A stretch of 64,000 nt of DNA from Anthoceros angustus (Eukaryota; Plantae; Anthocerotophyta): assembly GCA_010909165.1 (NCBI GenBank), contig MU008165.1:1798001-1862000 (forward strand), written 5' to 3'. Position numbers and translations under genes: made by a program. Within the stretch, counting starts at the first letter, position 1, and each line of letters starts with the position of its first letter. Shown piece after piece: positions 16,290 to 44,770 of the stretch. The notes under the pieces are model-generated. The model saw only the letters and a program-made list of their open reading frames with translations. It had not been told where the DNA came from and searched no databases.

Positions 16290-19200
16290 TTATTGATCCC
16301 CGCAAGAACAAAAGCCGTCCTTGAAATGGTGCACACAATGGGCATCTCTAACTACTATTTCACGCCCTTCAGTCCTTGAGATGAACTTGCTGCCGTTGTG
16401 ACAATGCTGGCACATCCTCAGATTCTTAACGACTAACAAGGGTGTGCCTGCTGGTGTATTCAGAAGACCATATGCTATAGCTAGTTTCTCAGCATGCCCG
16501 CACAGAGCCTCCTCCTCTTCAGCCTCATCCATTGGTTCCAATACTGGGCCTGTATGGGCCACATGCCCTTCCCCCTTCATCCGCTCATTCAAACTCCTCA
16601 ACTTGCTGTAAACATCATCTGCTTGTTGGAACTCTTTATCGCCCACAATTAACTCATGCACCGTACCACCTACCTGAATGGACGCCACTGCTGGCTTTTT
16701 GTTGGCACCTGCCCGCTTTTTCATCTTCTTTATGACATCAACGTCCTCCCACCTACCTGCATCTTCATAGATGCTTGACATTAGCACATACGCAGCAGCC
16801 TGTTCAGGTTCCATTTCCACGAGCCGATTAAAACACAACCTTCCACGTTCTACGTTGCCGAACTTCCTGCAGGCGCTTAACAAAGCCCTCCATCCTGCAC
16901 CGAGCCCTGACAAGGGGATGGATCCTAACAGACTTTGAGCTTCATCAAACAGGCCAGCCCTACCAAGCAGATCCACCATCGCCGTGTAATGCTCTACAGT
17001 CTGCGTGATGCCGTGACAATCCCTCATCATCCTGAAATACTTCTGACCCTCCGCCACCAAGCCCAGATGACTGCAGCTCGAGAGCAGCGATGTGAAAGTT
17101 GCAGAGTCGGGCTCCACTCCCTGTGCCTGCATCTTCTTAAATAATCCCAATGCCGTCTTCCAGTCGTGGTGCTGGCCATATCCATTGATCAGGGCAGTCC
17201 ATGCCACAACGTCTTTACATGGCAAACAGTCGAAGACTGTCTGTGCGTCCTCTAGATTCCCACACCTCACATACATGTCTACCAGGGTGCTTGCAACAAA
17301 CACATCTTCTTCCAGCCCCTGCTCGAGAATTTGCGCATGTGTTCGCCTTCCCTCCTGTAAGGCCCCGACGCTGCAACATGCTTTCAGAATGCCTGCGAAG
17401 ATGACACTGTTGTTTGGGATCACACCACTCCGCTGCATCCTCCTGTTGAGTGCAAGGGCCTCCTGACCAAGGCCATGTTGAGCATATCCGGCGATCATAA
17501 CACTCCATGTCCCTGTATCCTTGGCTGGCAATCTTTCAAAGACCTGTCGAGCCTCCTCCAGGCTCCCACAGGTGGTGTACATATCTATGAGGGAATTCCC
17601 GACCAATGTATCAGCTTCAAGTCCTCTTCCAACAATCTGGGAATGAATTCGCTGCCCTTCCTGTATCACTCCAGTACTTGCACATGCCTTGAGAACCGTC
17701 ACAAACGTGGTCTGATCTGGGGTAATGTCATCCAGCTGCATGCTTTTGAAAAGCTGAATGGCATCCCCACCAAGCCCGTGTTGCACGTATGCTGCACAGA
17801 TGATGTTCCATGTTACCACGTCACGTGTCCGCAAGCTGTCAAACACCTTGCGGGCATCGCTGAGACACCCGCATTTTGCGTACATGTCCGTAAGGGCACT
17901 TCCAACAAACATGTCTGATTCTAGCCCCCTTTCCACAATTTGTGTGTGAATCTGCTTGCCTATTTGAATAGCCTTGATGCTGCCACACGCTCTAAGACTG
18001 CTGACAAACGTGACCTTGTCTGGCACGATACCATCATGTTGCATGGTTGTATACAGTTTGAGGGCCTTGTCTCCCAGCCCTTGCTGACCGTATGCTGCGA
18101 TCATAATATTCCATGCTACCACATTTCTTCTGGGCAAACTGTCAAACAATTTGTGAGCATCGTCCAGGTTCCCGCACTTGGCATACATGTCCATCAAGGT
18201 GCTTCCAACGAAGAGATCCACCTGGAGTCCACTTTTTAGGACCTGAGTATGGATCCACTTGCCCTCCTGTATGGCTCCTACACTACCACATGCCTTGAGA
18301 GCACTTACAAGTGTAAGCTTGTCTGGTGTCATGCCCTCTTGCAGCATCCTGCGATAAACATCGAGAGCCTCTTCACCAAGTCCTTGCTGCGCATATCCTG
18401 AGATCATGGTATTCCAAACTGCTATATCTCTGGTAAGGAGTCCATCAAACACTGCTTGAGCATCCATCACGGCTCCACATTTACAATACATGTCAATCAA
18501 AGCACTTCCGACAAACACATCGGCTTCCAGTCTCATTTCCACGATGTCGGAGTGTACCGCCTTACCGTCCAATATGGATCCTAAATTCCCACACACTTTA
18601 AGGACGTGGACAACAGTGGCCTTTTCGGCTGTTATGCCATCTTGCCGCATTTTTACATAAAGCCTGAGGGCTTCTTCCCCGGACCCATGCTGAGCATATC
18701 CTACAATCATGGCACTCCATATCGGACCATCTCTTGTTCGCATGCCATCAAAGACTGTTCTTGCCTCCTCCAGGCACTGACACTTAGCATACATGTCCAC
18801 CAGTGCACTTCTAACAGAGCCATGTGCCACCGCTCCCCTGGTCACAATGTCCCTGTGAGCTTGCCTGCCAACCTGAACATTTCCCGTGCTAGCACACGCT
18901 TTCAAAATGGTGACGAATGTGACATCATCTGGCGTGAAACTTTGCTCTTGCATTTCTTGAAACAGCTTGAAGGCCTCCTGCCAATTCCCATGAAGAGAAT
19001 ACCCAGCAATCATTGCATTCCATGTCACCACATCTCTGGTCTGGAGCTTATCAAACACTGCGCGAGCATCCTCCAGACTTCCACACTTGGAATACATGTC
19101 GACCAATGTGTTACCAACGAACACATTAGACTCGGACCCAATATGCACCACATCACCATGAACTAGCTTGCCTGATGTCAAATCTGACGCACTTGCACAG

Positions 19201-20299
19201 GCTTTGAGGACAGCAACAAGGATGTAATCATCAGGCCGCACAGGTGTTTGTCGCAGTTGCTTATACAATTCTATAGCCCGAATTGCTTTTCCATGATCCA
19301 CATGGGCCGAGATAATTGCACTCCAAGCAAATACATTGGGGGGTTGAAGTTTGTAGAAGACTTCACTCGCTTTCTGCAACTCCCCGTGAGATGCATACAT
19401 GCGAATAATGTGGTTCCCCAGAAATGCGTTTGCCTCATGCCCATTCCTCACAGAGATGGCATGGACACGTCTGCCAGCAGCCTGGTCCTTCTGTGTGATG
19501 CACCATTTGAGGAGCTGGTACAACAAGTCGACAGAGACCACATACCCCTCCCGGTGCATGAGGTCCAAAGCTTGGAAGGCCTCATCAACCTGTCCCTCCT
19601 TATAAAAGCTGCTCCAAGCTCCTGAAGGACCTTCAGCCCTTGCAGCCCTGCATGCCCTCCTAGCAATTCAAAATCAAACATAACATTTTAGAAACAAAGG
19701 TGACAACAGAGCTACAAGTTTAGCCTCTCCATCGCCAAAGGGAGTGCACATAGCCAAAGGGAGTGCACACTGTGAACCTACTTGACGGAATGCAGATGGT
19801 CTCCAGCAGGGCCTCCATCTTCTCGGACAGATGCTGCACCAGCAGAGAATGTGTTCCTCAATCTCCCGGTGGGCACTGACCAAGAGTCCAGCCACAACCC
19901 ATCGTTTGCTGTCCTGTGCACGAAGTCCAGATGCTTGAGCTCTGTCTGTGGTGATCACCCAGGGTCAACTGCTACCTACAGACCAGGCAACACCTTCCAA
20001 AACAGATGGCAGAGCATGGCTACGACCTAAACCAATTCACCTTGCTCGATCTGCTGTTCCAAAACTGCGACGGATCAGCGAGTAATTTGTTCCTAACTGC
20101 GCCCTTCTCCATCAGCTCATCTGCAAGCCAGCTGGAACCGTGAGGTCCCGAAGAATTCACGGCAGGAGCAACAAACGGACGATCATTACCCACCGTTTTT
20201 CGGACGCTTCACGGGCCTCTGCAGACTTGATTGCCGCCTGCACCATGTCTCCGCAGGTAGACAAGGGATGAATTTCCGTTGCATCAAACTGGCCTTCAT
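16290..20299 (-). CDS. PLS-class PPR protein with a DYW:KP-type deaminase domain, ~1239 aa; exons 20299-20194, 20120-20041, 19945-19782, 19659-16290
   Basis: Many P-L-S triplets; KKPAVASI, HAEKLAIAYGLL, CQHCH, HHFKDGFCSCGDQ. Three GT-AG introns (phases 1, 0, 2) give an open frame from MKASLMQRKFIP. Confidence 0.92.
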
Positions 20300-20597
20300 T
20301 CGTTACCAGCGCTCCAAACAATCTGCAGTGTCAACACGCTGCAGATAAGAAGCCGAATCCTTCCTGAAATGTCGATGCTGGAACAAGATGAGATCTGTCA
20401 AGAGTCTACGAGTTCTGCTTGCACCAAGATGCTCAACTCGCCATGCGGGTTCCTTCAAAGCAACTGGTGGCCTCAGTAAGGCTGCTTTTGTTCCGGACAG
20501 CATGTGCGAGTTCCATTCCGACGTTCTTTGAGCCGGAGCTGTTGAGCCAATTGTATCATGCGCGCAACACTGGTTGCTACGCAAATGAGCAGCTCAA
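20300..20597. promoter_or_regulatory. Putative bidirectional promoter / 5'UTR spacer between the two DYW genes
   Basis: 298 bp between the inferred divergent ATGs at 20299 (-) and 20598 (+). Confidence 0.5.
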
Positions 20598-23500
20598 ATG
20601 AGGATAGTTGGGTCCTTCCGGCATATGGTCGGAACCTGTCAAAGGCTGACCAAATCGTGTTCTTTCCCACCCAAGGAAGAAGGGTGCCTAAGCTTCTCGA
20701 GCCTCCGGGATCCTTCGGAGGGCCAGAAATTTGCAAGCACCCTGGGTGAGTGGTCTGTATGCTTTCGGTTGGCTTCCTCAGCTCACGTTGATTTTCTGAT
20801 CTTGGAACTGGGTTGGGCTTTCAGATGATCCAAATGCATTGCGAGGGTGGAGAGGAAATAGCTCGAGCAAGGTATGATTCGTTCTTAGCTAATGGAACAT
20901 GGGTTATATGGCATAGACACCAGACATCTCTTGAACGGGCCTGAGAAATTTTGCAGAGACCCCTGGCAGACCCAACCTTCGTGGAAAGAAGCGAGAGGTT
21001 TTGGTCGGAAGTTGGATGGGTGAAGGACATGGGCCTTCGGCAGCAGAAGCCTTCTAGAGTACCAAATTCCATTCCAGTGCCTCCTGGTGTTCCATCTGGG
21101 GTTGACCCTGTGAGGTGCATTTTCTTCTATAGCTCTTGACAGCTTTCCAGTCATAGTCTTCAGGTGGATTTCGGTGTCTCTGACTAGCCGCCTCCGCACT
21201 TCCTTGTCCTAACTTGCTTGGCACGCAGGGTGGCTGTGTGCAATTCTTTGGACTCTGTTTCATGGAAAAAACTCTGTGAAGATGGCGAGGTGTATAAGGC
21301 TTTTGAGGCTGTGGATCTGATGGCTGAGGAAGGAACTTTCATCACCAGGGAGATGATATACTGCCTTATAAAGGGGTGCATAGCACAGAAGAATTTGCCA
21401 GTCGGACGGCAAGTTCATGATCTTACTGTCAGACGTGGATATGAGACCAACACGTTTCTGGCAAATCACCTCGTACGCATGTACGCTACTTTGGGAAGCC
21501 TACAGGAGGCAGATGACGTGTTTATGAAATTGGCTGCCCCAACTGCATTTGTATGGACTTCGATCATCTCAGCACATGCTGAGCAGGGGCAAGCAGAGCA
21601 TGCTATAAAACTCTATGAACGCATGCGAAAATCTGATATTCGAGCAGATTCGTACCTGTATGTGACTGTCCTTAAAGCTTGTACCATGGCCATAGATCTG
21701 ACATCTGGACAACTAGTGCATGCTGATGTAACTGATAACGGGTTTGAGTCAAACGTTTTTGTTGGGAGTGCTCTCCTGAACATGTATGCAAAATGTGGGA
21801 GCTTGGAGGATGCACGAAGGGTGTTTGACAGAATGTCCTCCAAGAACGTAGTCACCTGGAACACCATCATCACAGGATATGCTACGCAGGGGCTCGGTGA
21901 AGAAGCCCTTAAGCTGTTTGCTGGGATGCGCAAGGACGGAATAACTCCAGACAAAGCTACGTTTTTGAGCTTGTTGAAGGCGTGTACCAGTGCCCGAGCC
22001 ATAAAAGAAGGCAGACAGATCCATGCTCAGATAGTGGAAAGTGGACTTGAGTCTGATGGTTTTGTGGGCAGTGCCTTGATGGACATGTACGTCAAGTGTG
22101 GTAGCCTTGTAGATGCCAGGAAAGTGTTTGACAGATTACCAGCAAGAGATACTGTAACATGGAGTGCCATGATTTCAGGCTATGCTCAGCACGGCCTTGC
22201 TCCTGAGGCTCTTCAACTCCTCATAAGCATGCAGGAGGACGGGACCAGACCTGACAGTGTAACGTTTTTAGGCGTTCTGAAGGCATGTGGCAATACAGGT
22301 GCTCTGCAGGAGGGCAAACGGATCTACGCTCAACTCTTGGATTCGGGACTTGTTGAAGACTTGCTAGTAAAGAACAGCCTGCTGGAAATGTTTGTGAAAT
22401 GTGGGAGCCTGGAGGATGCCCGCAGAGTGTTTGACGCAATTATGATCAAAGATGTTATCACTTGGAACAGCATGATTGCAGGATATGCTCAGCAAGGTGT
22501 TGGCCAGGAAGCCTTAACACTGTTTGGAAGAATGCAGCAGGTAGGGATGGTGCCAAATGTGACTACGTTTGTGAATATTCTGAAGGCATGTGGCAGTGTT
22601 GGGGCGATCCAGGAGGGCAAGCGGGTACATACACAAGTTGTGGAGAAGGGACTGTTAGTAGATCTCATTGTGGCAAACAGCTTGGTCGACATGTATGCAA
22701 AGTGTGGGAGCCTGGAGGAGGCTCAATCAGTGTTTGATGGAATGTCAAAGAGAGACGTGGTGACTTGGACTGCCCTGATCAATGGTTTCGGACAGCACAA
22801 CAGGTGCGACATGGCAATGCAGTGCTTTGACAAGATGCAACGACAGGGAGTTGTCCCTGATGCAGCAACCTTTCTGTGTCTTCTCGTGGCGTGCAGTCAT
22901 GTGGGACTGGTGGACAAGGGGCAGCAGTACTTCAGAATGATGGTAGAGACGTATGGCCTCGTTCCCGGGGTTGAACACTACACCTGCATGGTTGATCTCC
23001 TCGGCAGGTCTGGCCAATTGGACGAGGCGGAACAAATGCTGGAAACAATACCATTTGGACAAAACAGCGTGGGCTGGAGATGTTTGCTCAGCGCCAGCAA
23101 AACATACCACAACATCGAGGTCGGAAGGCGGTGCTTTGACCGTCTTGTGCAAATGGAGCCCCAGCATGCCTCGTGCTATGCTCTCATGACTGACATGTAT
23201 TCTGAGGCAGGGAGGTGGGAGGATGTAGACGACATAGAAAACTTGAGAAAATGGGCTGGTGCAGAGAAGAAGTTTGCCTCAGCTTCGATAGAAGTCAATA
23301 ACCAGGTGCACGAATTCACCGTGGGATCAAACAGGGATGATACAGGGGCGAAGCTAAGGAGCCTGAATCAGCAGCTTACACTGGGCGGCCATGGCCCACA
23401 AATGGACTTATTCCTGGAATCGCTGTCTGAGAAGGAGAAGGAAGATGCTCTTTGTGGACATGCTGAAAAACTGGCTGTAGCTTTCGGTCTTCTCAACACT

Positions 23501-23668
23501 CCTGAAGGCAGCACTCTGCTGGTGACCAAGAACCTCAAAATGTGCAGTCACTGCCACAGTGGCACCAAAATCATCTCTAGCATTGAAAAACGTGAAATCA
23601 TCGTGAGGGATGCTCACCGAGTGCATCATTTCAAGGAAGGGGCATGCTCTTGCGGTGATGATAATTAA
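20598..23668 (+). CDS. PLS-class PPR protein with a DYW:KP-type domain, ~930 aa; exons 20598-20745, 20825-20871, 20957-21114, 21229-23668
   Basis: PLS repeats; KKFASASIEV, HAEKLAVAFGLL, CSHCH, HHFKEGACSCGDDN. Introns of phases 1, 0, 2 keep the frame from MRIVGSFRHM. Confidence 0.92.
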
Positions 23669-24339
23669 GACAGTTACATCATACTTCCTTGGAATGCCAG
23701 GGCTCGGAAATCACCTCTTTTTGTACGTATTTAGATTGCGCTGAAATTGAGCCATTCATATTAATATGGGCTCACAGCAGTGCCTGTTAACTGACTGTTA
23801 CATCGTCTTCGGACCACGAGGGATCCAATATGTGAGTGGAACGTTCTTCGACGCTCAAACTCGTCGTTGTCAGATACTTTATACCGTTGAATTCGAGATG
23901 GCATAACTCATCAAGCGCTTACGCTCTCTAAAAGCAGATGAATGCCGAGAGTATCCTCGACTTCACCTGAAATCACAAAACTTGGTCATCGCCCCAGTGT
24001 GCCTAATCCTCGGGTATCTCAGGACGTGAACTGCTACTTTGTAGCAGATCACATTCAGATCCCCGACGGAAGATACAAAGTGAATGCAAGATTCACCAGG
24101 TTCCCACTCCAGGCAGGTGCTAAAGGGAGCACGTGCCTACAATGGGTTGATTAATATACATACCATGCAGGTTTCCTTGAGCAAGATCCCCGCCCGCAGG
24201 ATGGTTTAGCAAGGCGACCTGACTCAACTCGAGTTCAGTGACCGAGAGCCTTGCACAGCAGTAAGCATCAGAGATCCTCCTGGAGCATCAACAGCTCATT
24301 CCCACAAATCCGCGTCCACATGTTTTGTGGAGCTAGTTC

Positions 24340-26835
24340 TTATACGAAGAAAACATCTTGATTCATTTCCCGCTCTGTGAACTCCTTCGCTTTCCTTGTT
24401 TGACCAGCCTTGTTAAAACCATTGATGATGTTGGCATATGTGATCTCGTTCGGGAGAAGCCCCTTCTCTTTCATCTCTTCAAACAGAACACAAGCTTCAT
24501 CCAATCGTCCAGACCTGGCAAAAGCATCAATCAGCGACGAGAACGTTATCACATTTGGGCTGAGACCTTCAGCTTGCATATCCTTGAACAGCTGGTATGC
24601 CTTATCAATCTGGCCAAATTTGCCAAGACTGTCGATCAAAGAACTGTAGGATACCACATCCCCTGACATATTCTGTTCCTTCATTTCCCTCAAAAGCTTG
24701 CAAGCTTCGTCTAACCGCCCCACCTTACCAAGCCCATCTATCAGGGTGTTGTAGGTGATAGCATCTGGTTGTAAGCCTTGCTGAGCCAAATCCCTGAAAA
24801 TGCTCAAAGCCTCCTCTATCTGCCCATCGCGGCTGAGCACACCAATGAGTACATTGTACGAAAATACTCCTGTAACAAGCCCTCTTCGCCTCATTTCATC
24901 AAACAGAGAACAAGCCTTATCGACTTGACCGCCTCTACCAAAACCAACAATGAGTGTCCCAAAAGCCACCGCGTCAGGTACAACTCCATTCTTGTTCATG
25001 TCTTCAAAAATGCTGTAAGCTTCCTCATACTGCCCCGCTTTGCAAAGCACACCAATGATAGTACTGTAACATACTGCATTGGGGGCTATCGGTTTCTCCT
25101 TCAGACTGTTGAAAACCTCCAAAGCAGTCGAGGGCTGACCAGCCTTACCCAGTCCATCGATCAAGGCCGTGTAAGTGATAACATTTGGTTGCACCCCTGC
25201 TTCTGCCATAGCATCCAATATAACCTGCGCTTGGTCCACCTGTCCAGTCCTAGCAAGCGCTGAGATTAGAATGTTGTACGTAACGGCGTTGGGGTAAATT
25301 CCGTTCTCCTGCATCATGTCCAGTGTTTGAAACGACTGCTCCAATTGCCCCGCTTTTGCAAATCCACTTATGACACTGTTGTACGTGACCATGTCTGGAG
25401 TGACTCCCGCTTTTCTCATCGCAACAAAAAGCTTAATGGCCTCAAACATTTGACCAGCTTTACCATTTGCATCTATGAGGGAGTTGTAGGTTATCACATC
25501 AGGAGAGATACCTGCCTTAGACATGTCTTCAAAATGTCCTGTGGCTTCCAGGAGCCGGCCAGCCTTGTTCAGCCCTCCAATCATAACATTGTAAGTGAAC
25601 AAATTAGGAGGAATACCTTTCCCCCTCATATCGGCAAAGAGCTCGCAGGCCTCATCGATCTTCCCAGATTTGCAAAGCTGATCCATAAGCGTCGAATACG
25701 TAATAACATCAGGGGAAACGCCAGACCCCTCCATGGTGCCAAACAGCCTCAGCGCCTCGTTGAACTGCCCCGCCTTCCCCAGCCCGTGTATCAACCCATT
25801 AAAAACAAGGAGATTCGGAGGCAAGTCCATCTCCCTGAAGATCCCATAGCCTTCAGAGACCTGACCCGCCTTCACCAGACCATTGATCAGAGCAACATAA
25901 GTCCACTTGGACACAGCCAGACCCAGCCTCCGCATCTCCAAGTACAGCTTGTACGCCTCATCCATAAACCCCACTTTGTAGGAGCTATAGATGAGACGGT
26001 TGTACGCTCTCTGGTCCAACACAAACCCACACGCCAACATGTGGTGATAAACCTCGATGCACCCCTGATGCAGCCCATGTCTGGACAGAGTGCCGAGCAA
26101 AAAATTGCACACCACCGGGCTGGGCTGCAGGCCACAACCGGTCAGGGCCAGAAAGGCCTTATACGACCCGCAGGGATTCTTCTCCCTGTCGAACCTCAAC
26201 ACAATCCGGAAAATGTAATTCTGCACGTCCTCCCCTTTCCCATCCATCACCTTGAGCAGCTGGCAAATCTCCTCAAACCTGAGGCAGTAGCCCAGATGCC
26301 TCAACATGGGCTCATAAGTGCTCTCCGTGTGCTGGTAGTCCGGCAATGTCCCAGCCCAGTTGAAGAATCCCCACGCAGTATCCACATCCTGCACCTTCTG
26401 CATCACCAGCCGCACATGGTGGGGCTTCAAATCGGGGTCCAGCTCCGTCAGCGCCCTCTCCACCTCGGAATCCCACTTTCCGGGCCTCAGAATCCTCAAA
26501 ATGTTGGGTATAATCGCCTGCTCCCCATTCCTCACCACCTCCTGCCTCTCCTCCAATTCCTCCTTCGCCTCCACCGTTACTCCTGCCTGCTGCCTGGGGG
26601 GAATCCGCAGCACCGCTGCTGCGCACAGTCCCCTCCCTTCCCTACATTTCCCCCCGAATCCAACCAACCTAGGGCGCACCGTGACCGCTTTCCAGCCACA
26701 CGAATTCCTGGCCGCCACGCTCTTGCAAGGTCCAGGCAAGGAAGCCATCCGCAGGCGCCTCACCGCCAGGCATTTCTCTCCCCCCGCCGTCCCGCCCTGC
26801 AGCTGCAATCCACCCGGAACCGAGACGGACCCCAT
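24340..26835 (-). CDS. P-class PPR protein, single exon, with a probable organellar transit peptide
   Basis: Long run of 35-aa repeats (PDVITYSTLMDQLCKSGKIDEACELFADMRGKGI type); first ATG at 26835; basic, Ala/Arg-rich N-terminus. Confidence 0.92.
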   Translation of the reverse strand: MGSVSVPGGLQLQGGTAGGEKCLAVRRLRMASLPGPCKSVAARNSCGWKAVTVRPRLVGFGGKCREGRGLCAAAVLRIPPRQQAGVTVEAKEELEERQEVVRNGEQAIIPNILRILRPGKWDSEVERALTELDPDLKPHHVRLVMQKVQDVDTAWGFFNWAGTLPDYQHTESTYEPMLRHLGYCLRFEEICQLLKVMDGKGEDVQNYIFRIVLRFDREKNPCGSYKAFLALTGCGLQPSPVVCNFLLGTLSRHGLHQGCIEVYHHMLACGFVLDQRAYNRLIYSSYKVGFMDEAYKLYLEMRRLGLAVSKWTYVALINGLVKAGQVSEGYGIFREMDLPPNLLVFNGLIHGLGKAGQFNEALRLFGTMEGSGVSPDVITYSTLMDQLCKSGKIDEACELFADMRGKGIPPNLFTYNVMIGGLNKAGRLLEATGHFEDMSKAGISPDVITYNSLIDANGKAGQMFEAIKLFVAMRKAGVTPDMVTYNSVISGFAKAGQLEQSFQTLDMMQENGIYPNAVTYNILISALARTGQVDQAQVILDAMAEAGVQPNVITYTALIDGLGKAGQPSTALEVFNSLKEKPIAPNAVCYSTIIGVLCKAGQYEEAYSIFEDMNKNGVVPDAVAFGTLIVGFGRGGQVDKACSLFDEMRRRGLVTGVFSYNVLIGVLSRDGQIEEALSIFRDLAQQGLQPDAITYNTLIDGLGKVGRLDEACKLLREMKEQNMSGDVVSYSSLIDSLGKFGQIDKAYQLFKDMQAEGLSPNVITFSSLIDAFARSGRLDEACVLFEEMKEKGLLPNEITYANIINGFNKAGQTRKAKEFTEREMNQDVFFV

Positions 26836-27133
26836 CGGACGCAACAACAGCAAATTTTGGAGGAAATCATTTATTTAAATCCGCCGATGCGTTGCGCCTG
26901 GCAGCAAACAAGCCCACGAGTGCAGCAGCAGCATATAACAAATGACAAAAGAGGGCACAGCTGCTTCGTTGCAAGGAATCCAGCCTTCTGTCTTGTTGTT
27001 GCAAGGGTCGCGCATTGAAGCGAGCATGAATAGAGGAATGCAGTCCATTATGTTCTGTTAACTTAGCTAGCTAGGTAGTCCATCTACTGAGTTCTCAAAA
27101 CAAAAGGGTTCTCTATACAAACAAAAGAGTTGT

Positions 27134-35850: not shown

Positions 35851-38764
35851 GAAGGGAAGGACCAAAAAAACAACAACTAATGAGAGGACTGAGGAGAAGT
35901 GCGTCACTGCAAGCAATGAAGAGAGGAAGACATCGACATGCTAGCCAGCAACAAGGACTGCACATCAGGATCAAGATTAGCGATAGATCTTGGGATATCA
36001 TCATCATAGCTAACATCCTTAGCAACAACAGCAGGTTAAGGAGGTGTAGGTACAATTGGTGCAGGGACAATAGGTGCAGCAGGTAAATTTCCCTCTAAAT
36101 GGTACTTATGTTTCTCCTGGGCTGCTTGGAACATTCTTAAAATGATACACCTATGTTTCTCCTGAATGCCCGGGCTCTTGATCTGCTATCCAAATGCCAA
36201 GTCTATCCACTATCGGATTTCGATGCTTGAGGTTACCTTTGGTATTTATGTTAAATGTAGATCGAGAGGCAGGAGCCTCAATGGCTAAAAAGTTGGACAC
36301 CTCCAACTGCTAGGAAGTTGGGGGAGGAAGATTCCTGGCAACACTTCCACCAAACTCTAGAGCCCCTCAACTCACTAGGGTGGCAGAGAAGCTCTTCCCC
36401 CATACCTCCATAGTCCAAAGCTTGGATTTTTTATATCCATTTTTCACTTAACCCCAAATGACCGTTTCATATTTTACCTCAGATCTTTGAAATTATATTA
36501 TTTTTTAGTATTCATCTTTTGATGTTCTTCTGTAAATTATATCGGGTGGGCCCGACACATATGCTCAAAGGTCCGGGATCTTCAATCGGTGTGGAAAAAT
36601 TCATAGAGTCCAAAACGCAAACTTACACACTTCTCTAAACTAGTAGGATTTGGAGAGAGAATGCATGGCGGGGCACATGCATGGGTGCTGCGATACACAT
36701 TGTCGTATAGATAAGTAGATTTGGATGGTAGGGCATATATATGCTTGGGTGTCGTGACACCTAGTGCTTGACTCTAGGTGTGCGTGGTTTTTATGGCTAT
36801 GTTAGAGCCCATGCAACTGGAATTCCATTCTGGTGCTAGTCAAAGACCATGACAGTAAATAATTGATACTTGTACTTATTTACTTGAAAAATTGGGTCCA
36901 TAGCAAGTAAATTATTGTGTTCATGTTGTACACAAATCTCCAACATGAAGGATGTTTGCTAGCTGAGGCAAAAAGCTTTCCATCACCAAACCTGTGAAAC
37001 ACATACTCTATATATAATTGCATCCACATTCCCACACTGAGGTGATCGTTCTCATGATAGCTCCACTCTCTCTTGTCTACCTCCCTAGCTATATTGTAGA
37101 CATCGTCCCATGTGATCATGAGGGAGTCATCCCTTACCTTCACATAGTGGGGGCCTCATGGATTGATAAAACAAAGGGACAACATTTAACCACTAAAGAA
37201 AATTGATGACGTCGTAAAATCTTATCAACATATACGTGACAATATAAACAATGTCTCACCCAAGCTCTCTTCTTCATTGACAAATGTAGTTCTCTAATAT
37301 CTCGAATTATGCCTGTCGATACTAATCTTCTTATGCTATGTGCGGAAATTGTTTTCATGCTACTTCTTACTCAGATTATATCGGAATAGCACAAACAGCA
37401 TACCATTAGAATCGTGGCAACTAAATAAACAAGTTAGTATATGGCTTGTTTACATTAGTAACGACTAGAGAGAGTGCTGAAAAATTAAAGCCTTCATGTG
37501 AGCAAAACGTTTTCATTCAGCAGCTTGTTCAAAGCTGCTTAGAATCGAACAAAAAGGTCATCGTCACATTCTTCTCCACAAGAAAAATACTTTGGTGATG
37601 ATTTTATAAGAATATAGACTACTTGAGTAAGCTCTGAGTTATAAAAGACATGCGGTTAGAGACAAGGCATGCTATGTGAATCAAAGTGAGAGGAAGCATT
37701 TCTACAAACCAAACCCAATATACCTCACTACCATGATTGGTGAATCTGCTTTAGGTTGACTGGGTTGTGACAATTGACTTGGACCCTTTGTTCATACTGA
37801 TGCAAAATTTGTGGGTGCTCCATTATGGCTATCCATTCCCGCCATGAAATCTTCCACATGTCCCAAGCAATGTGTGAATTCCTGGCTTCCTTCATACGTC
37901 CTTGGGCAGAAGATTTCTTTTGTAGAGCAATTTTTGTCATGTTAGGTGGCATTCTCCAAACGTGTTGGCTGTGGTACTTCGATGGAAAAGGGAAAATATT
38001 AATCCCTCGGCAAATCAACTTCCACCATCACGACTAACATGCACTCATTCAGCAGCAAAGTGTTGCAACTCAACTCCCGCTATCATGGATAACACGTACT
38101 CATTTGGCGCCATTGCATTCTAACCAAAACGGGGTTTCGGCATTTCAGTTAAGTTAGATTCAAAGACGGAAGGCCGCCGCTCAACGGGGTTGATGCCCAA
38201 CGAAGCCGGTGGCCGGTGAAGGCTAAACCGTATAAACATTCTCTACGTCACGGGTCTAGATGGCCAACATGAGAAGGAGATTAGACTAAAGACCATGTGA
38301 TCGTATTGAAGTGGAGACCGAATAAATATGTGCAGCTCCTGCCATACATTTAAGGTGTAAGTGGGTTTGAAAATATGTTTCTTATTTTTGGATTATTTGT
38401 TTTGGGTTTAAATATGGGTTTTAAATTATTAAGTACATTTAAAAGTAAAAATTAATCAAATTTAAAAAATACATGTTTAAACCTAGACTAATAGTTAGGG
38501 TTTTGAATGAATTAAGAAACACATTTTAAAAACTAAAATGAAAATTAGGGTTAGGATGAATTAAGAAATGCATTTTCAAAACTAAACTGACAATTAAGAT
38601 TTAGGATGAATTACGAAACACATTTTCAAAAATAAACTGACAGATAAGGTTTGGGAATCTTTTTTCTAATCATCGAAACCAAAAAGATTAAAACTAAATA
38701 ATATCTTACAACCCATGATCCCTAACTAAACGCCAAAAACAATGTGCCCTTAGCCTGCACCCTT

Positions 38765-38983
38765 GTCCAAACGGCTTAGGCCAAATAGACACACATTTAT
38801 AAGAACGTCGTGATTAAGCATCCTGAGCTTAGATCGGTACTTAGATGGGGTGCTTAAAGGGAGTGGATGCCCTTGGTGCAAGTAGCTTAGGCACGCCATG
38901 GTGAAAGTGGTTAAGTACCGAGTCCCATGATGGAAATCCGTCCTTAATGGGCTTAAAATAAAATTCTTCTTCTTCTTCTTCTT
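38765..38983 (+). mobile_element. Candidate 5S-rRNA-derived SINE, copy 1
   Basis: AGAAC-N7-TTAAGC..GTACTTAGATGGGG..GGGAGT keeps 5S A-box/IE/C-box spacing; then an ~80 bp body and a (TTC)n tail; second copy at 42767. Confidence 0.6.
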
Positions 38984-40351
38984 GACCGCGACTATTTAAT
39001 CCATAGTCTTTGAGGTTAGGGGTCCTAATTACAATGATCTAAGTAAAACAAGAAATAGTGATATAAGATGTAAGTATTATTGATATAATTTAGTAGGGGA
39101 GGAGCCTACTATGTGGAGAAGTAAGTAGCAAGCATCGCAGGAGCGGAGAAATGTGTGAAGTGGTATTATAGCGAGTAAAAGATAGCCTAGCTAGAGACAA
39201 ACAAAAAGTGAATACGACACAAAAAAAATATTATGCATATATCACGCTTTTGTGGCGCAGCCACAACGTGGCTGTGAAACTCGAGGAGGCGCCGCTGTAA
39301 ATGGCGACCGTCTTCCGGCCTTCCAGCCTTCCAGCCTCACCAGGCCCACGACTCATGATATGCACCCGCACGTATCCCGTGACTGTGAAGCTGCGCTGCG
39401 AGACGTGCAAATCGAGTGGCAACAGTTTCCAGAAGCTCGGCAAACGGGAAATGTATAGAATTTCCCGTCTGCTTTTCTTCTGTTCTAGAGTGTATGCAAA
39501 GTGATGGGCAACGGCGTAGCTACGCTGAAGTTGTGAGTTGTAAGCACACATCTTACAAGAAACGAAGGTTACTGGAACGCCCCGCCGCTTCGACACAAAT
39601 GTCACGTTTCCCAAGGCGGTGCTGTCGTCCAAATCCGCAGTGCAGGCCTGTGTGAAAAGCACGGCCAGGTCCTGACACACGCAGTTCCAGCGGAAATCGC
39701 TGGTCAGAGGAAACTCCCCAGTTGCTTCTTCCCGGCGGTGCAGAAGCTGGATGTGGAAGAAGTGAGATTGCGTAGCACAGATTGGAGCAGGCAGCAGCTG
39801 GAGTGCAATTCTGGTCCGCTGAGCTGCAAGGCTGGGTGTGAGAAGGCTGGAAAAGGCAGGAGTGGGTGCAGGAGGGAGGTGTTGCTTGCCTGGCCTTGCT
39901 TAGCTACACGAGGATTGCATGAGCTGTGTCCGGCGAGGTCCAGTTTAATCGAAGAAAGTCGGGAAGGTGGGCCACCCGTGACAGCAGCCACATCTGGGGA
40001 GCTGGGTGCTGCTTGTGACGAGAGAAGGGCAGCACGAGCAGGAGCAGGTGAGGCAGATCGGCTGCGGCATCGGCGGATCGGGGCCGTGGCCATGGCGCCG
40101 GTGGCTGGATGTCTGAAGATCTTGTGGTCTGCGTCTGGCAGCATTCTTCGTGCGTGAGCTTCCAGGTGGGGAATTTGGGTTGAGTTGGGGGGGTGTGAGT
40201 GTTGAGGAAATGCAATGCTGAGGCCAGGTTTGGACGTTGACGACGCTGTGGTTCAGATCTGGTGGAATGGACGGGGGAGCTGGTGGTATGATGTGAGACA
40301 GTAGAGATTGGAGAGTCTCCGGACTGGATCTGGGGGTGGTTGGGCCTGAAA

Positions 40352-42012
40352 ATGACAAGGCAGCCTGTACCGAAGCTTTCTAAGCCAGGAGTAGGAGCGG
40401 TGCTGCAGAAGTCGTTCAGGTTGTTGCGAGGTCACGCTCAGCATTTCTTCCTCGTTGCAGCCGTGCTCATCTTTCCTCTTACCCTAATCTCTTCCCTGGT
40501 ACATACTCCTACCTTCAACGCGATTGTCAATGACACCCCGGGGCTCATTTTCACCCTCGTTCCCGCAAATTCTGCCCTGTCAGCGATTAGAAACCCCGGT
40601 GATCTGCATCACTCCCTTCTAGACTTCCCGACGCATCTCACCTCGCAGAGCAGGCATCTGCTTCAGTTTACAGATGACGAGGGTTCGTTGCTTGGGATTA
40701 AGGTGAAGGATGGCGACGCACAGAAATCGGGGTTTCTGGACTTCTTCCGAGGCTTCTTTGGGTCTGCTGCAGAGAGCAAAAACCTGACTCTTCCTGATAA
40801 TTTCGCCTTGAATGCCTCGATTGAAGCATCTACCAGCATACCAGAACCTCAGGGTAACATTTCTTTGAGCAGCCAGCAAATAGATGGGGACTCGAACGCG
40901 AATGGTGAGATCAAGGACTCTGTTGAAGATGAAGGCGACATGCTGGCAAGCTTCACCTCGGAGAAGGCTTCCCAGCTCTTCTGGATGGTGCTCTTGATCG
41001 TGTGCGATTTAGGAGCTTGGGTTGTTCTGAAGTGTGTTTCAGAAGCAGCTGTGGCCACCAGTGTCGCAGGTAGTTACTTGGGAACACTGGCAGGGTTGCC
41101 TGGACAACCGAAGAAGGTTTTCTTCACCCGTGATTATTTCAGGTATGTCTGCTGCTAGTGTGCTGGTTTGTACTACCTGATGGGGGACTCCCCCTTAGTG
41201 TCGATCTTCTTATCAACTTTTCTGCTTCTCTTTCATTGACCAGGTCACTATGGCACGCCTCTGGCCGAGTCTTCGTCACCGTCCTTGCACTAGGGAGTCT
41301 ATTCACAATTATTGATGTGCTGCTATTCACTGCTCTAATTGTTGAGTACGCTGTCTTGATGCTGCTTCTGAACGTTCCTGCCCTCACCGTCATCTTTCTG
41401 GCGATGACTTTCCTGTTCTTTGGCGTGGTTGCCATTCATGTGCTTATTGTCACAACCCTAGCCCCCGCTGTCTCTGTTCTGGAGGGCAAGTATGGATGGA
41501 CAGCTCTCGCAAGAAGTGCATACCTCATTAGAAATTCCAGGAAGTTTTCAACTGCCTTCTTGCTCAAAATCATCATCCTGGTTGTGCAATACCTGCTTCT
41601 AGGGCTGGGAGTGAACGCACTCATTTATGGGTTCATCGACTTCAGCGCCAGGCTACTGCTAGGCAACAAGTCAGTGGAGGAATTCGCCCGTTCTGAGGGT
41701 GTGGTGAAGATACCATGGATGGTGATTGACTATGACATCCTCTTCAACAACACGGTGGCCACTGCTGTTACTCTGTTCACTATTGTGGTGAACACAGTTC
41801 TCCTCTTCTTCTGCAAGACAGGGTGTGGAGAGCACCTCGGCGAGAAGGTGACTTTTGGGGGTAGTAGAGAGCTCACTGAACTAGTTAGGGATGGTAGCAC
41901 TGCTCATAGAAGCTCGGGGACAGGCACTTCTTACAATGCCAGTGATTCTTTGCTAGAGTTTGTGTCACCTTCGAGCTCCCATGCCATTCGGCATGGCGGC
42001 CATGGGCCCTGA
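40352..42012 (+). CDS. Multi-pass membrane protein of an uncharacterised plant family; exons 40352-41142 and 41244-42012
   Basis: Several hydrophobic helices; motif LAPAVSVLEGKYGWTALARSAYLI; one phase-2 GT-AG intron. Confidence 0.8.
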
Positions 42013-42766
42013 ATCCTGGACGTGATTTTGTCCTAGATTATGTGGGAGGGGGCGGCGGGGGGAAATTCGAACTGCATCACCCCCGTCATTAGCTCCTCTC
42101 ATTACCTCATGTAGATTAGTAAAAGTGGGTCGATATTGTTCCTGTGGATTGTTAGATCCGCCGCTCAATTCATTCACACTTACCGGTTCACCTAACGAAT
42201 AACTCTTTCCTTTGCCATTCTGCTTCTGTCTGACTGACAAAAAAATAGAGCAGCTGCAACGTGTTGTGGTGTGATGCCCAACTTGTGCATCACATTCACA
42301 CCTATCTTGCCACTTCACTGCCACAACCTTCCGACTTCCTGTCTCTGTGAACTTTACTCCCTGCTACCTGTCAGAGCATGCTTTTCAGAGCAGCTACGTT
42401 CCAAACCCGGCATGTTTCAAGTGTTGTCGTTACATTTCTTCCACAGTGCCATTTTAAAGACGCAAAAAACAGATGACGCTGCTAGAACTTAAATGCCAAA
42501 CCCGGTTGGCTGCATTGCGGGATTTGAGAACGCATTATCACTCTACATGAACACTCTTTTTGTGACGCTAATTATGAACCCTGTAAACTGAAGAATACGG
42601 GTGTGGTGTGACCGGAGACAATATGTCACGTATGTGTGCAGTTTCCAGCCGGAAAATTAAGTTCTTCCTGCCTACCTAGTAGCTAGTTAAACATACAATT
42701 TGAAATTTGAAACCGTTGAGGTACCGTACACCGAGGGGTGGTTCAACAGGGTTATGCCAACTGTGT

Positions 42767-42978
42767 GTCCAAATGGCTTAGGCCAAATGAATACACATTT
42801 ATAAGAACGCAGTTATTAATCATCCTGCGCTTAGTTCGGCACTTAGATGGGGTGCCTAAAGGGAGTGGATGCCATTGGTGGAAGTAGCCTGGGCACACCA
42901 TGGTACAAGTAGTTAAGTACCAAGTCCAATAACAGGAAAATTCCATTCAAGTGGACTATAATATATTCTTCTTCTTCT
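42767..42978 (+). mobile_element. Candidate 5S-rRNA-derived SINE, copy 2
   Basis: Colinear with 38765-38983 (roughly 75-80% identical by eye); (TTC)4 tail; TATGCC occurs on both sides as a possible TSD. Confidence 0.6.
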
Positions 42979-43974: not shown

Positions 43975-44770
43975 GGCCCCAGGGAATGGTGGCATCGACA
44001 AAGGTGACTTCGGTTGCCATCGATGCAGCTATGGCCACCGCCATGAACAACATGATTGAACTGCTGGAGAAGGTGCGAAACCTCAAGCTGCGGTGCACAA
44101 AGATGGAGAGCGTTATGGGTACTTCCGTAGATGGTACGCAAACAGGAGGAGCCACGCAGGAGCCACATCTGTTGAGTTCATGGAGTACATGAATGTAGCC
44201 ATGGCAGGCTCCTCTTTGAATCCAACCAGGCCTTTGAGAGGTTTCAAGTTTGGTGCACCTCCTCCCCCTCCTTCCCCTTTCCCTCCTCCCTCTCCTTTCC
44301 CTTTCATTTGAGCAATGCATCTCGCTCCCCCTCCAATTCCACAGGGACAGCCGGCTGCACCCTGTGCCATGGAGGGAGAGGTGCAGCCGGCTGTCCCTGT
44401 GGAATTGGAGGGGGAGCGAGATGCATCCCCGGAATGAAAAGAAAAGGAGAGAGAGGAGGGAAAGGGGAAGGAGGGGGAGGAGGCGCACCAAACTCGAAAC
44501 CTCTGAAGGGCCCGATTGGGTTCGAGGAGGAGCCTGTCATGGCTATGTTCATGGAGTGGTGTTCATAACTATGGTTTCTGCATGGCTACCCTTGTTTGCG
44601 TGCCATCTATAGAAGTGGGGTTCCATCCATAATGCCCTCCATCTTCGTTTATTGTAGCTTGAGGTTGTGCACCTTTTCCACCAATTCAATCATGAGGTTC
44701 ATGGCACCGGCCATGGCTGCATCTATGGCAACCGTAGTCACCTTCTTCGATGCCACCATCCCCCGAAGCT
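43975..44770. repeat. Long inverted repeat made of two diverged gag-like segments joined tail-to-tail
   Basis: Arms encode MVASTKVTSVAIDAAMATAM.. (+) and MVASKKVTTVAIDAAMAGAM.. (-); perfect 47 bp stem 44315-44361/44380-44426 with an 18 nt loop. Confidence 0.92.

Follow-up and report, generated by a model that had tools for sequence, protein, structure and literature searches.

A SINE-type retroposon with a candidate 5S-derived head in the hornwort Anthoceros angustus

Two copies of a short element around a host gene

The window analysed here is a 64-kb stretch of contig MU008165.1 of the hornwort Anthoceros angustus (positions 1,798,001 to 1,862,000; 48% GC), in which a non-coding element of ~215 bp (212-219 bp) is found twice, in direct orientation, with a conserved host gene in between. 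Copy A lies at 38765-38983 and copy B, which is more decayed, at 42767-42978, both on the + strand. This pair had been described in an initial annotation made from the sequence alone, and the two copies were recovered at the same places by BLASTN (82.4% identity over 216 nt), by a repeat finder (87% identity over the first 165 nt, ungapped) and by alignment; a family profile built from both copies scores them at 232.9 bits (copy A) and 230.9 bits (copy B). The common 5' start is (T)GTCCAAA, homology in copy A possibly beginning one base earlier, from T38764. No additional copy, complete or partial, was detected in the window with BLASTN or the family profile. The flanks, likewise annotated as unrelated, share on either side only short AT-rich matches attributable to chance, and are themselves AT-rich (55-84% AT vs 52% in the window).

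The two copies share the same internal organization. Close to the 5' end of copy A, a small hairpin, GGC-UUAG-GCC, is predicted at 38773-38782 (z = -3.45), and copy B carries an identical one. At the other end, a nested stem-loop is found at 38920-38954 in copy A (-13.4 kcal/mol, z = -2.68) and a stem-loop at 42923-42957 in copy B (-9.9 kcal/mol, z = -2.57); this structure is kept in both copies although no other part of the element has diverged as much. It is followed in each case by an A-rich spacer, which contains AATAAA in copy A (38955-38963), and then by a (TTC)n tail of differing length: (TTC)6 plus TT at 38964-38983 in copy A, with the six units at 38964-38981, and (TTC)4 plus T at 42966-42978 in copy B, with the four units at 42966-42977. 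The GTCCAAA start and (TTC)n end noted initially are thus present in both copies, and the two tails are the only (TTC)4 tracts of the window, for a chance expectation of 0.01. A defined 5' end, a short body, a 3' stem-loop, a variable tail and independent insertion sites, together with the absence of long terminal repeats (LTRs), of a site for primer binding (PBS) and of a polypurine tract (PPT), fit the anatomy of a short interspersed element (SINE) mobilized by a long interspersed element (LINE). Both copies are SINE-type retroposons, a conclusion that can be drawn with high confidence.

Over their first 165 bases, copies A and B differ at 23 positions (14 transitions and 9 transversions), and three CpG dinucleotides are left in copy B vs six in copy A. 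Both copies are old and, with this number of differences, probably dead. A CpG-based inference of the ancestral sequence settles three of the 23 differences, none of them in the head of the element.

The 3.8-kb interval between the copies is occupied by a two-exon host gene on the + strand (40352-42012; exons 40352-41142 and 41244-42012), delineated from its open reading frames (ORFs), a GT..AG intron and an in-phase splice. Copy A is inserted ~1.4 kb upstream of this gene and copy B ~0.75 kb downstream of it. Its exons were searched one by one rather than as a joined protein; the second falls among uncharacterized streptophyte protein clusters of an atlas (all Streptophyta, score 0.94), and no Pfam family was found for the gene. 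Its product is an uncharacterized membrane protein of streptophyte-wide distribution and, with a conserved host gene inside it, the interval is not the interior of a transposon.

The element itself only contains short, spurious ORFs. An antisense ORF running through copy B has no word-sharing homologue, and an exact 27-base pattern of the element gave zero matches in viral contigs and in metagenome contigs. When a profile of both element ORFs was compared with 1.84 billion protein representatives, a single weak match was returned (P0001), a 218-aa hypothetical protein of Homalodisca vitripennis made of ~80-aa tandem repeats. This candidate was rejected, as it shows no match to real 5S in the relevant frame, and it probably represents the translation of an insect repeat, with no detectable relation to 5S.

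Of note, a weak inverted match to positions 5-77 of the family profile (E = 0.078) is seen on the - strand at 42720-42788, where it overlaps copy B's 5' end together with the flank upstream. It could be due to chance, to the palindromic 5' hairpin, or to the remnant of a head-to-head fragment.

Likeness of the head to 5S rRNA

The initial annotation had proposed that the head of this element derives from a 5S rRNA gene and carries the internal promoter elements of such genes, i.e., box A, the intermediate element (IE) and box C, which form the type-1 promoter of RNA polymerase III (Pol III). This proposal was examined with a sequence-only nhmmer profile obtained from an alignment of 15 Rfam-verified 5S genes (A3) and run with --max on both strands of the window, i.e., on 128 kb of strand sequence. 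Copy A is the best match of the window to this profile (8.9 bits, E = 0.048), followed by copy B (3.7 bits, E = 1.9); both matches are on the + strand and in the sense orientation, with element position 36 facing 5S position 38. In copy A, the 5S-like stretch extends from 38800 to 38849 and aligns without gaps to 5S 38-87, with 32 identical positions out of 50. The corresponding stretch of copy B, at 42802-42857, covers 5S 38-93 in the same register and is identical to 5S at 29 of the 50 positions of 5S 38-87, so that identity over this region is 58-64% in the ungapped alignment. The near-gapless alignment over ~75 nt that had been reported is therefore reduced to ~50 nt: past GATGGG, indels are required and identity falls to chance (5-6/16).

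Within this stretch, copy A displays a box A-like sequence at ~38812-38826, an IE-like sequence at 38829-38834 and a box C-like sequence from 38842. Box A is matched at 9/15 positions in copy A and 8/15 in copy B, the IE at 3/6 and 2/6, and the 5' half of box C at 6/8 in both. Except for box C in its 3' half, the three motifs are found in both copies in the order, with the spacing and at the distance from the start that are typical of 5S. When only box A, the IE and box C are considered, the match has a p-value of 0.017 and 0.03 in the two copies, and the implied +1 of 5S falls at element position -1; in the fixed register of the alignment, element position 1 corresponds to 5S position 3. The motif from which the annotation started, AGAAC-N7-TTAAGC-N17-GTACTTAGATGGGG..GGGAGT, is exact in copy A, but copy B has TTAATC and GCACTTAG instead. 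In pairwise local alignments with 5S, copy A scores above all 2000 shuffled sequences in one scoring scheme, and with p ~0.01-0.2 in others. Judged from these alignments, it is moderately probable that the head of the element is a diverged 5S-type promoter, and we infer that it would descend from a 5S gene rather than having converged on its promoter motifs.

Several observations weigh against such an origin, or against the LINE-dependent life cycle that goes with it. The check that had been suggested for both copies, a search with the Rfam 5S model RF00001, gave no match on either of them at E <= 10, and a covariance model of our own (R1), run with filters off on the whole window, returned 18 chance matches in it, neither copy being among them. 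The element hence retains no 5S fold; at the Rfam gathering score, the whole window is devoid of any 5S, tRNA or other family. Regarding the primary sequence, only 13 of 35 positions are identical over 5S 3-37, and the likeness is at or near chance over 5S 1-37 and 88-119, as it is in the 3' half of box C (3-4/10). The profile score is marginal, copies A and B are related and hence not independent, copy A is significant in only one of three scoring schemes, and copy B taken by itself does not reach significance in the pairwise alignments; the CpG-based ancestral inference mentioned above leaves the 5S score unchanged. Furthermore, 8.9 and 3.7 bits are low values in comparison with the 25-43 bits obtained, against a single 5S gene, for partial-5S repeats found in metagenome contigs (see below), and by this measure of sequence these repeats stand much closer to 5S than the head does. 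There is also no clear preference for 5S of the plant type (33/52) over that of the animal or fungal type (28-30/52), a comparison that relies on four diagnostic columns only. Plant 5S genes also require upstream elements, which a retrocopy would not bring along. Lastly, with two copies only, there is no consensus; no target-site duplication (TSD) is demonstrable, as copy A has none and the 7-of-8 candidate abutting the tail of copy B is at chance level; and neither a LINE nor any other element with a (TTC)n tail was found within the window by BLASTN, by Pfam, by a (TTC)n scan or with the family profile.

The comparators used here came with observations of their own. A C-box pattern scan yielded eukaryotic 5S genes in metagenome contigs, and a plant-type 5S pattern pointed to 28 small contigs that contaminate bacterial assemblies (L122-L149), 20 of which were checked and verified with Rfam at 100-115 bits. 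These are mostly low-coverage contigs carrying plant 5S rDNA units, pointing to contamination by plant DNA, and some of them contain two 5S genes at a spacing of ~500 bp, in the manner of a tandem array. In the metagenome contigs (L002-L121), only four of 20 tested loci reach the Rfam 5S threshold. About 88 contigs of this set carry only the internal-promoter part of 5S (5S ~30-100), in several subfamilies, and look like SINE3-type repeats of an animal host in host-associated metagenomes.

Alternative origins of the element

The main rival to a 5S-derived head is that the element is a genuine LINE-dependent short retroposon whose likeness to 5S is coincidental. Its head would then come from elsewhere, for example from the 5' end of the partner LINE, the element being in this case an internally deleted LINE, or from another RNA, and its promoter would possibly not be of type 1. 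The negative results of both covariance models and the borderline E-values of the profile are in line with this explanation, as is a likeness that covers only ~50 nt and lacks one half of box C. It accounts less well for the fact that, in 128 kb of strand sequence, the top two matches to the 5S profile are precisely the two copies, in the sense orientation, with an implied 5S start located 2-3 nt from the 5' end of the element. As far as sequence scores allow such an estimate, the combination of a window-best score, the sense orientation and a start-matching register is unlikely to have arisen by chance (roughly 1e-3 or less). A coincidental likeness is considered possible, though doubtful.

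A tRNA-derived SINE (SINE2), with a head decayed past recognition, is a much less plausible origin. To our knowledge, the plant SINEs described to date are all tRNA-derived, and GGCTTAGG, at element positions 9-16, loosely resembles a box A and is as far from the 5' end as such a box usually is. Nonetheless, the highest-scoring pair of A and B boxes does not stand out from those of dinucleotide shuffles (p = 0.54 and 0.15), ARAGORN predicts no tRNA in the copies, and Rfam searches at E <= 10 found no tRNA, 7SL or U6 in them. With tRNA boxes at chance level and both searches negative, a tRNA-derived head was rejected as very unlikely.

The presence of only two copies, 4 kb apart, might also evoke something other than a retroposon, such as a miniature inverted-repeat transposable element (MITE) or the remnant of a local segmental duplication. 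Both were rejected, since the flanks are unrelated on both sides, terminal inverted repeats are absent and the microsatellite tail is preceded by a hairpin and differs in length between copies, which makes this explanation extremely improbable.

The least credible possibility is that the copies are the LTRs of a single element resembling Cassandra, i.e., of a terminal-repeat retrotransposon in miniature (TRIM) or a large retrotransposon derivative (LARD), or else two solo LTRs. In its favour are the direct orientation of the repeats and their spacing of 4 kb, a preceding T that would allow a TG start in both, and the 5S-like sequence known from Cassandra LTRs. Against it, the 3.8-kb interior contains the conserved host gene, copy A is not adjoined by a tRNA-Met PBS (the closest match, with 2 mismatches, is 178 bp away and of a kind found at chance frequency in the window), no PPT is adjacent, both copies end in (TTC)n of unequal length and not in CA, and no 5-bp TSD surrounds the pair. 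The host gene in the interval and the lack of PBS, PPT and LTR termini rule out a Cassandra/TRIM pair and argue for two SINE-type insertions, in agreement with the initial statement that no LTR pair is present.

Relation to known elements and genomic neighbourhood

Taken together, these data favour, with modest confidence, two old and independent insertions of a LINE-dependent SINE with a 5S-type head. The classification that had been put forward, a LINE-mobilized, 5S-derived SINE, is thus borne out as to anatomy; its 5S part is plausible but weak on these copies. It is an even question whether the element is a true SINE3, driven by a 5S promoter and mobilized by a LINE, in a seedless land plant. 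If so, type-1 Pol III transcription would start at GTCCAAA, ~50 nt upstream of box A, which would make the transcription start the first base of the repeat. The transcript would then cover the 3' stem-loop, A-rich spacer and (TTC)n tract before entering flanking DNA. The reverse transcriptase of a resident LINE would recognize the stem-loop together with the microsatellite tail, and the element RNA would be copied into a nicked AT-rich target by target-primed reverse transcription. Transcription by Pol III, the use of TFIIIA and TFIIIC, and the partner LINE are thus predicted components of this cycle, the sole indirect support for Pol III being that neither copy contains an internal TTTT run.

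Such an element would have its closest known counterparts in the SINE3 group, which comprises zebrafish SINE3, AmnSINE1, 5S-Sauria, fruit-bat MEG, lepidopteran HaSE3 and the 5S-related SINEs of Aspergillus. Like these, it is a short non-coding retroposon in which 5S-like box A, IE and box C lie at 5S-like distances from the 5' end, ahead of a body and a 3' end of the LINE type. It differs from them by its land-plant host, by a stem-loop and (TTC)n tail, and by a much more diverged head (8.9 bits vs the 25-43 bits of the metagenome partial-5S repeats). Other mobile elements derived from 5S have kept the promoter motifs and lost the 5S fold, as is true for the heads of diverged SINE3 and of Ajax (Kojima, 2024). 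The element studied here is similar to them in that its likeness to 5S is centred on the promoter motifs while the fold is lost.

Cassandra is another case of a plant mobile element with a 5S-type Pol III control region, which here is predicted from sequence. In contrast to this TRIM, the Anthoceros element lacks an LTR pair around a short core, a PBS, a PPT, TG..CA termini, a 5-bp TSD and a 5S fold, and its microsatellite tail points to retrotransposition of the LINE type and not of the LTR type. It also has features in common with the tRNA-derived SINEs of plants, such as the Au-like SINEs and TS, which ends in (TTG)n: a size of ~200 bp, a microsatellite-like 3' end and T/A-rich targets. The dependence of Au-like SINEs and TS on RTE-clade LINEs was deduced from their common 3' ends. 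Unlike them, the present element has a head devoid of tRNA features, and its partner LINE is not seen in the window.

In LINE/SINE pairs of the stringent type, such as UnaL2 and UnaSINE1, a 3' stem-loop ahead of a short tandem-repeat tail is the presumed signal for the reverse transcriptase. The element likewise has a stem-loop directly before a short tandem-repeat tail, which may act as a recognition signal, although its sequence is unrelated.

Consistent with the initial remark that no such element had been described in plants, a 2024 review states that no 5S-derived SINEs are known there and that the 5S promoter is known in plants only inside Cassandra LTRs. Searches of the accessible literature for later reports found no plant SINE with a 5S head, and SINEs are not mentioned in the Anthoceros genome papers that it includes. 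Among animals and fungi, SINEs with a 5S head have emerged repeatedly. A plant family would, if confirmed, fill a gap and be the first SINE3 in plants. It has been speculated that Cassandra itself stems from a SINE3 inserted into an LTR (Kojima, 2024), an idea for which there has so far been no plant SINE3 to serve as a test. If true, the element would be a living example of the type proposed as the seed of the 5S module in Cassandra LTRs, could be compared directly with Cassandra and with host 5S genes, and would indicate that type-1 Pol III promoters are able to drive retroposition in plants. By themselves, these two old copies give little beyond evidence of insertion near genes.

Other repeats are found in the vicinity of the two copies. 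About 110 bp upstream of copy A, at 38462-38654, lies a tandem repeat with a period of ~49-50 bp, at least three units that are 63-77% alike, and telomere-like TTAGGGTT motifs. A large nested inverted repeat is present ~1 kb downstream of copy B, at 43982-44763; its inner arms, of 174 nt, are 89% complementary and 18 nt apart, and its outer arms, of 137 nt, are 82% complementary. This structure could be a foldback element or a locus for a long-hairpin RNA.

Farther away in the window, three intronless pentatricopeptide repeat (PPR) genes are located on alternating strands at 16290-26853. Two of them encode proteins with E and DYW deaminase domains, which marks the window as nuclear DNA of a land plant, while the third is of the P type, with 14 repeats; their closest database proteins are at the level of paralogues, with at most 51% identity.

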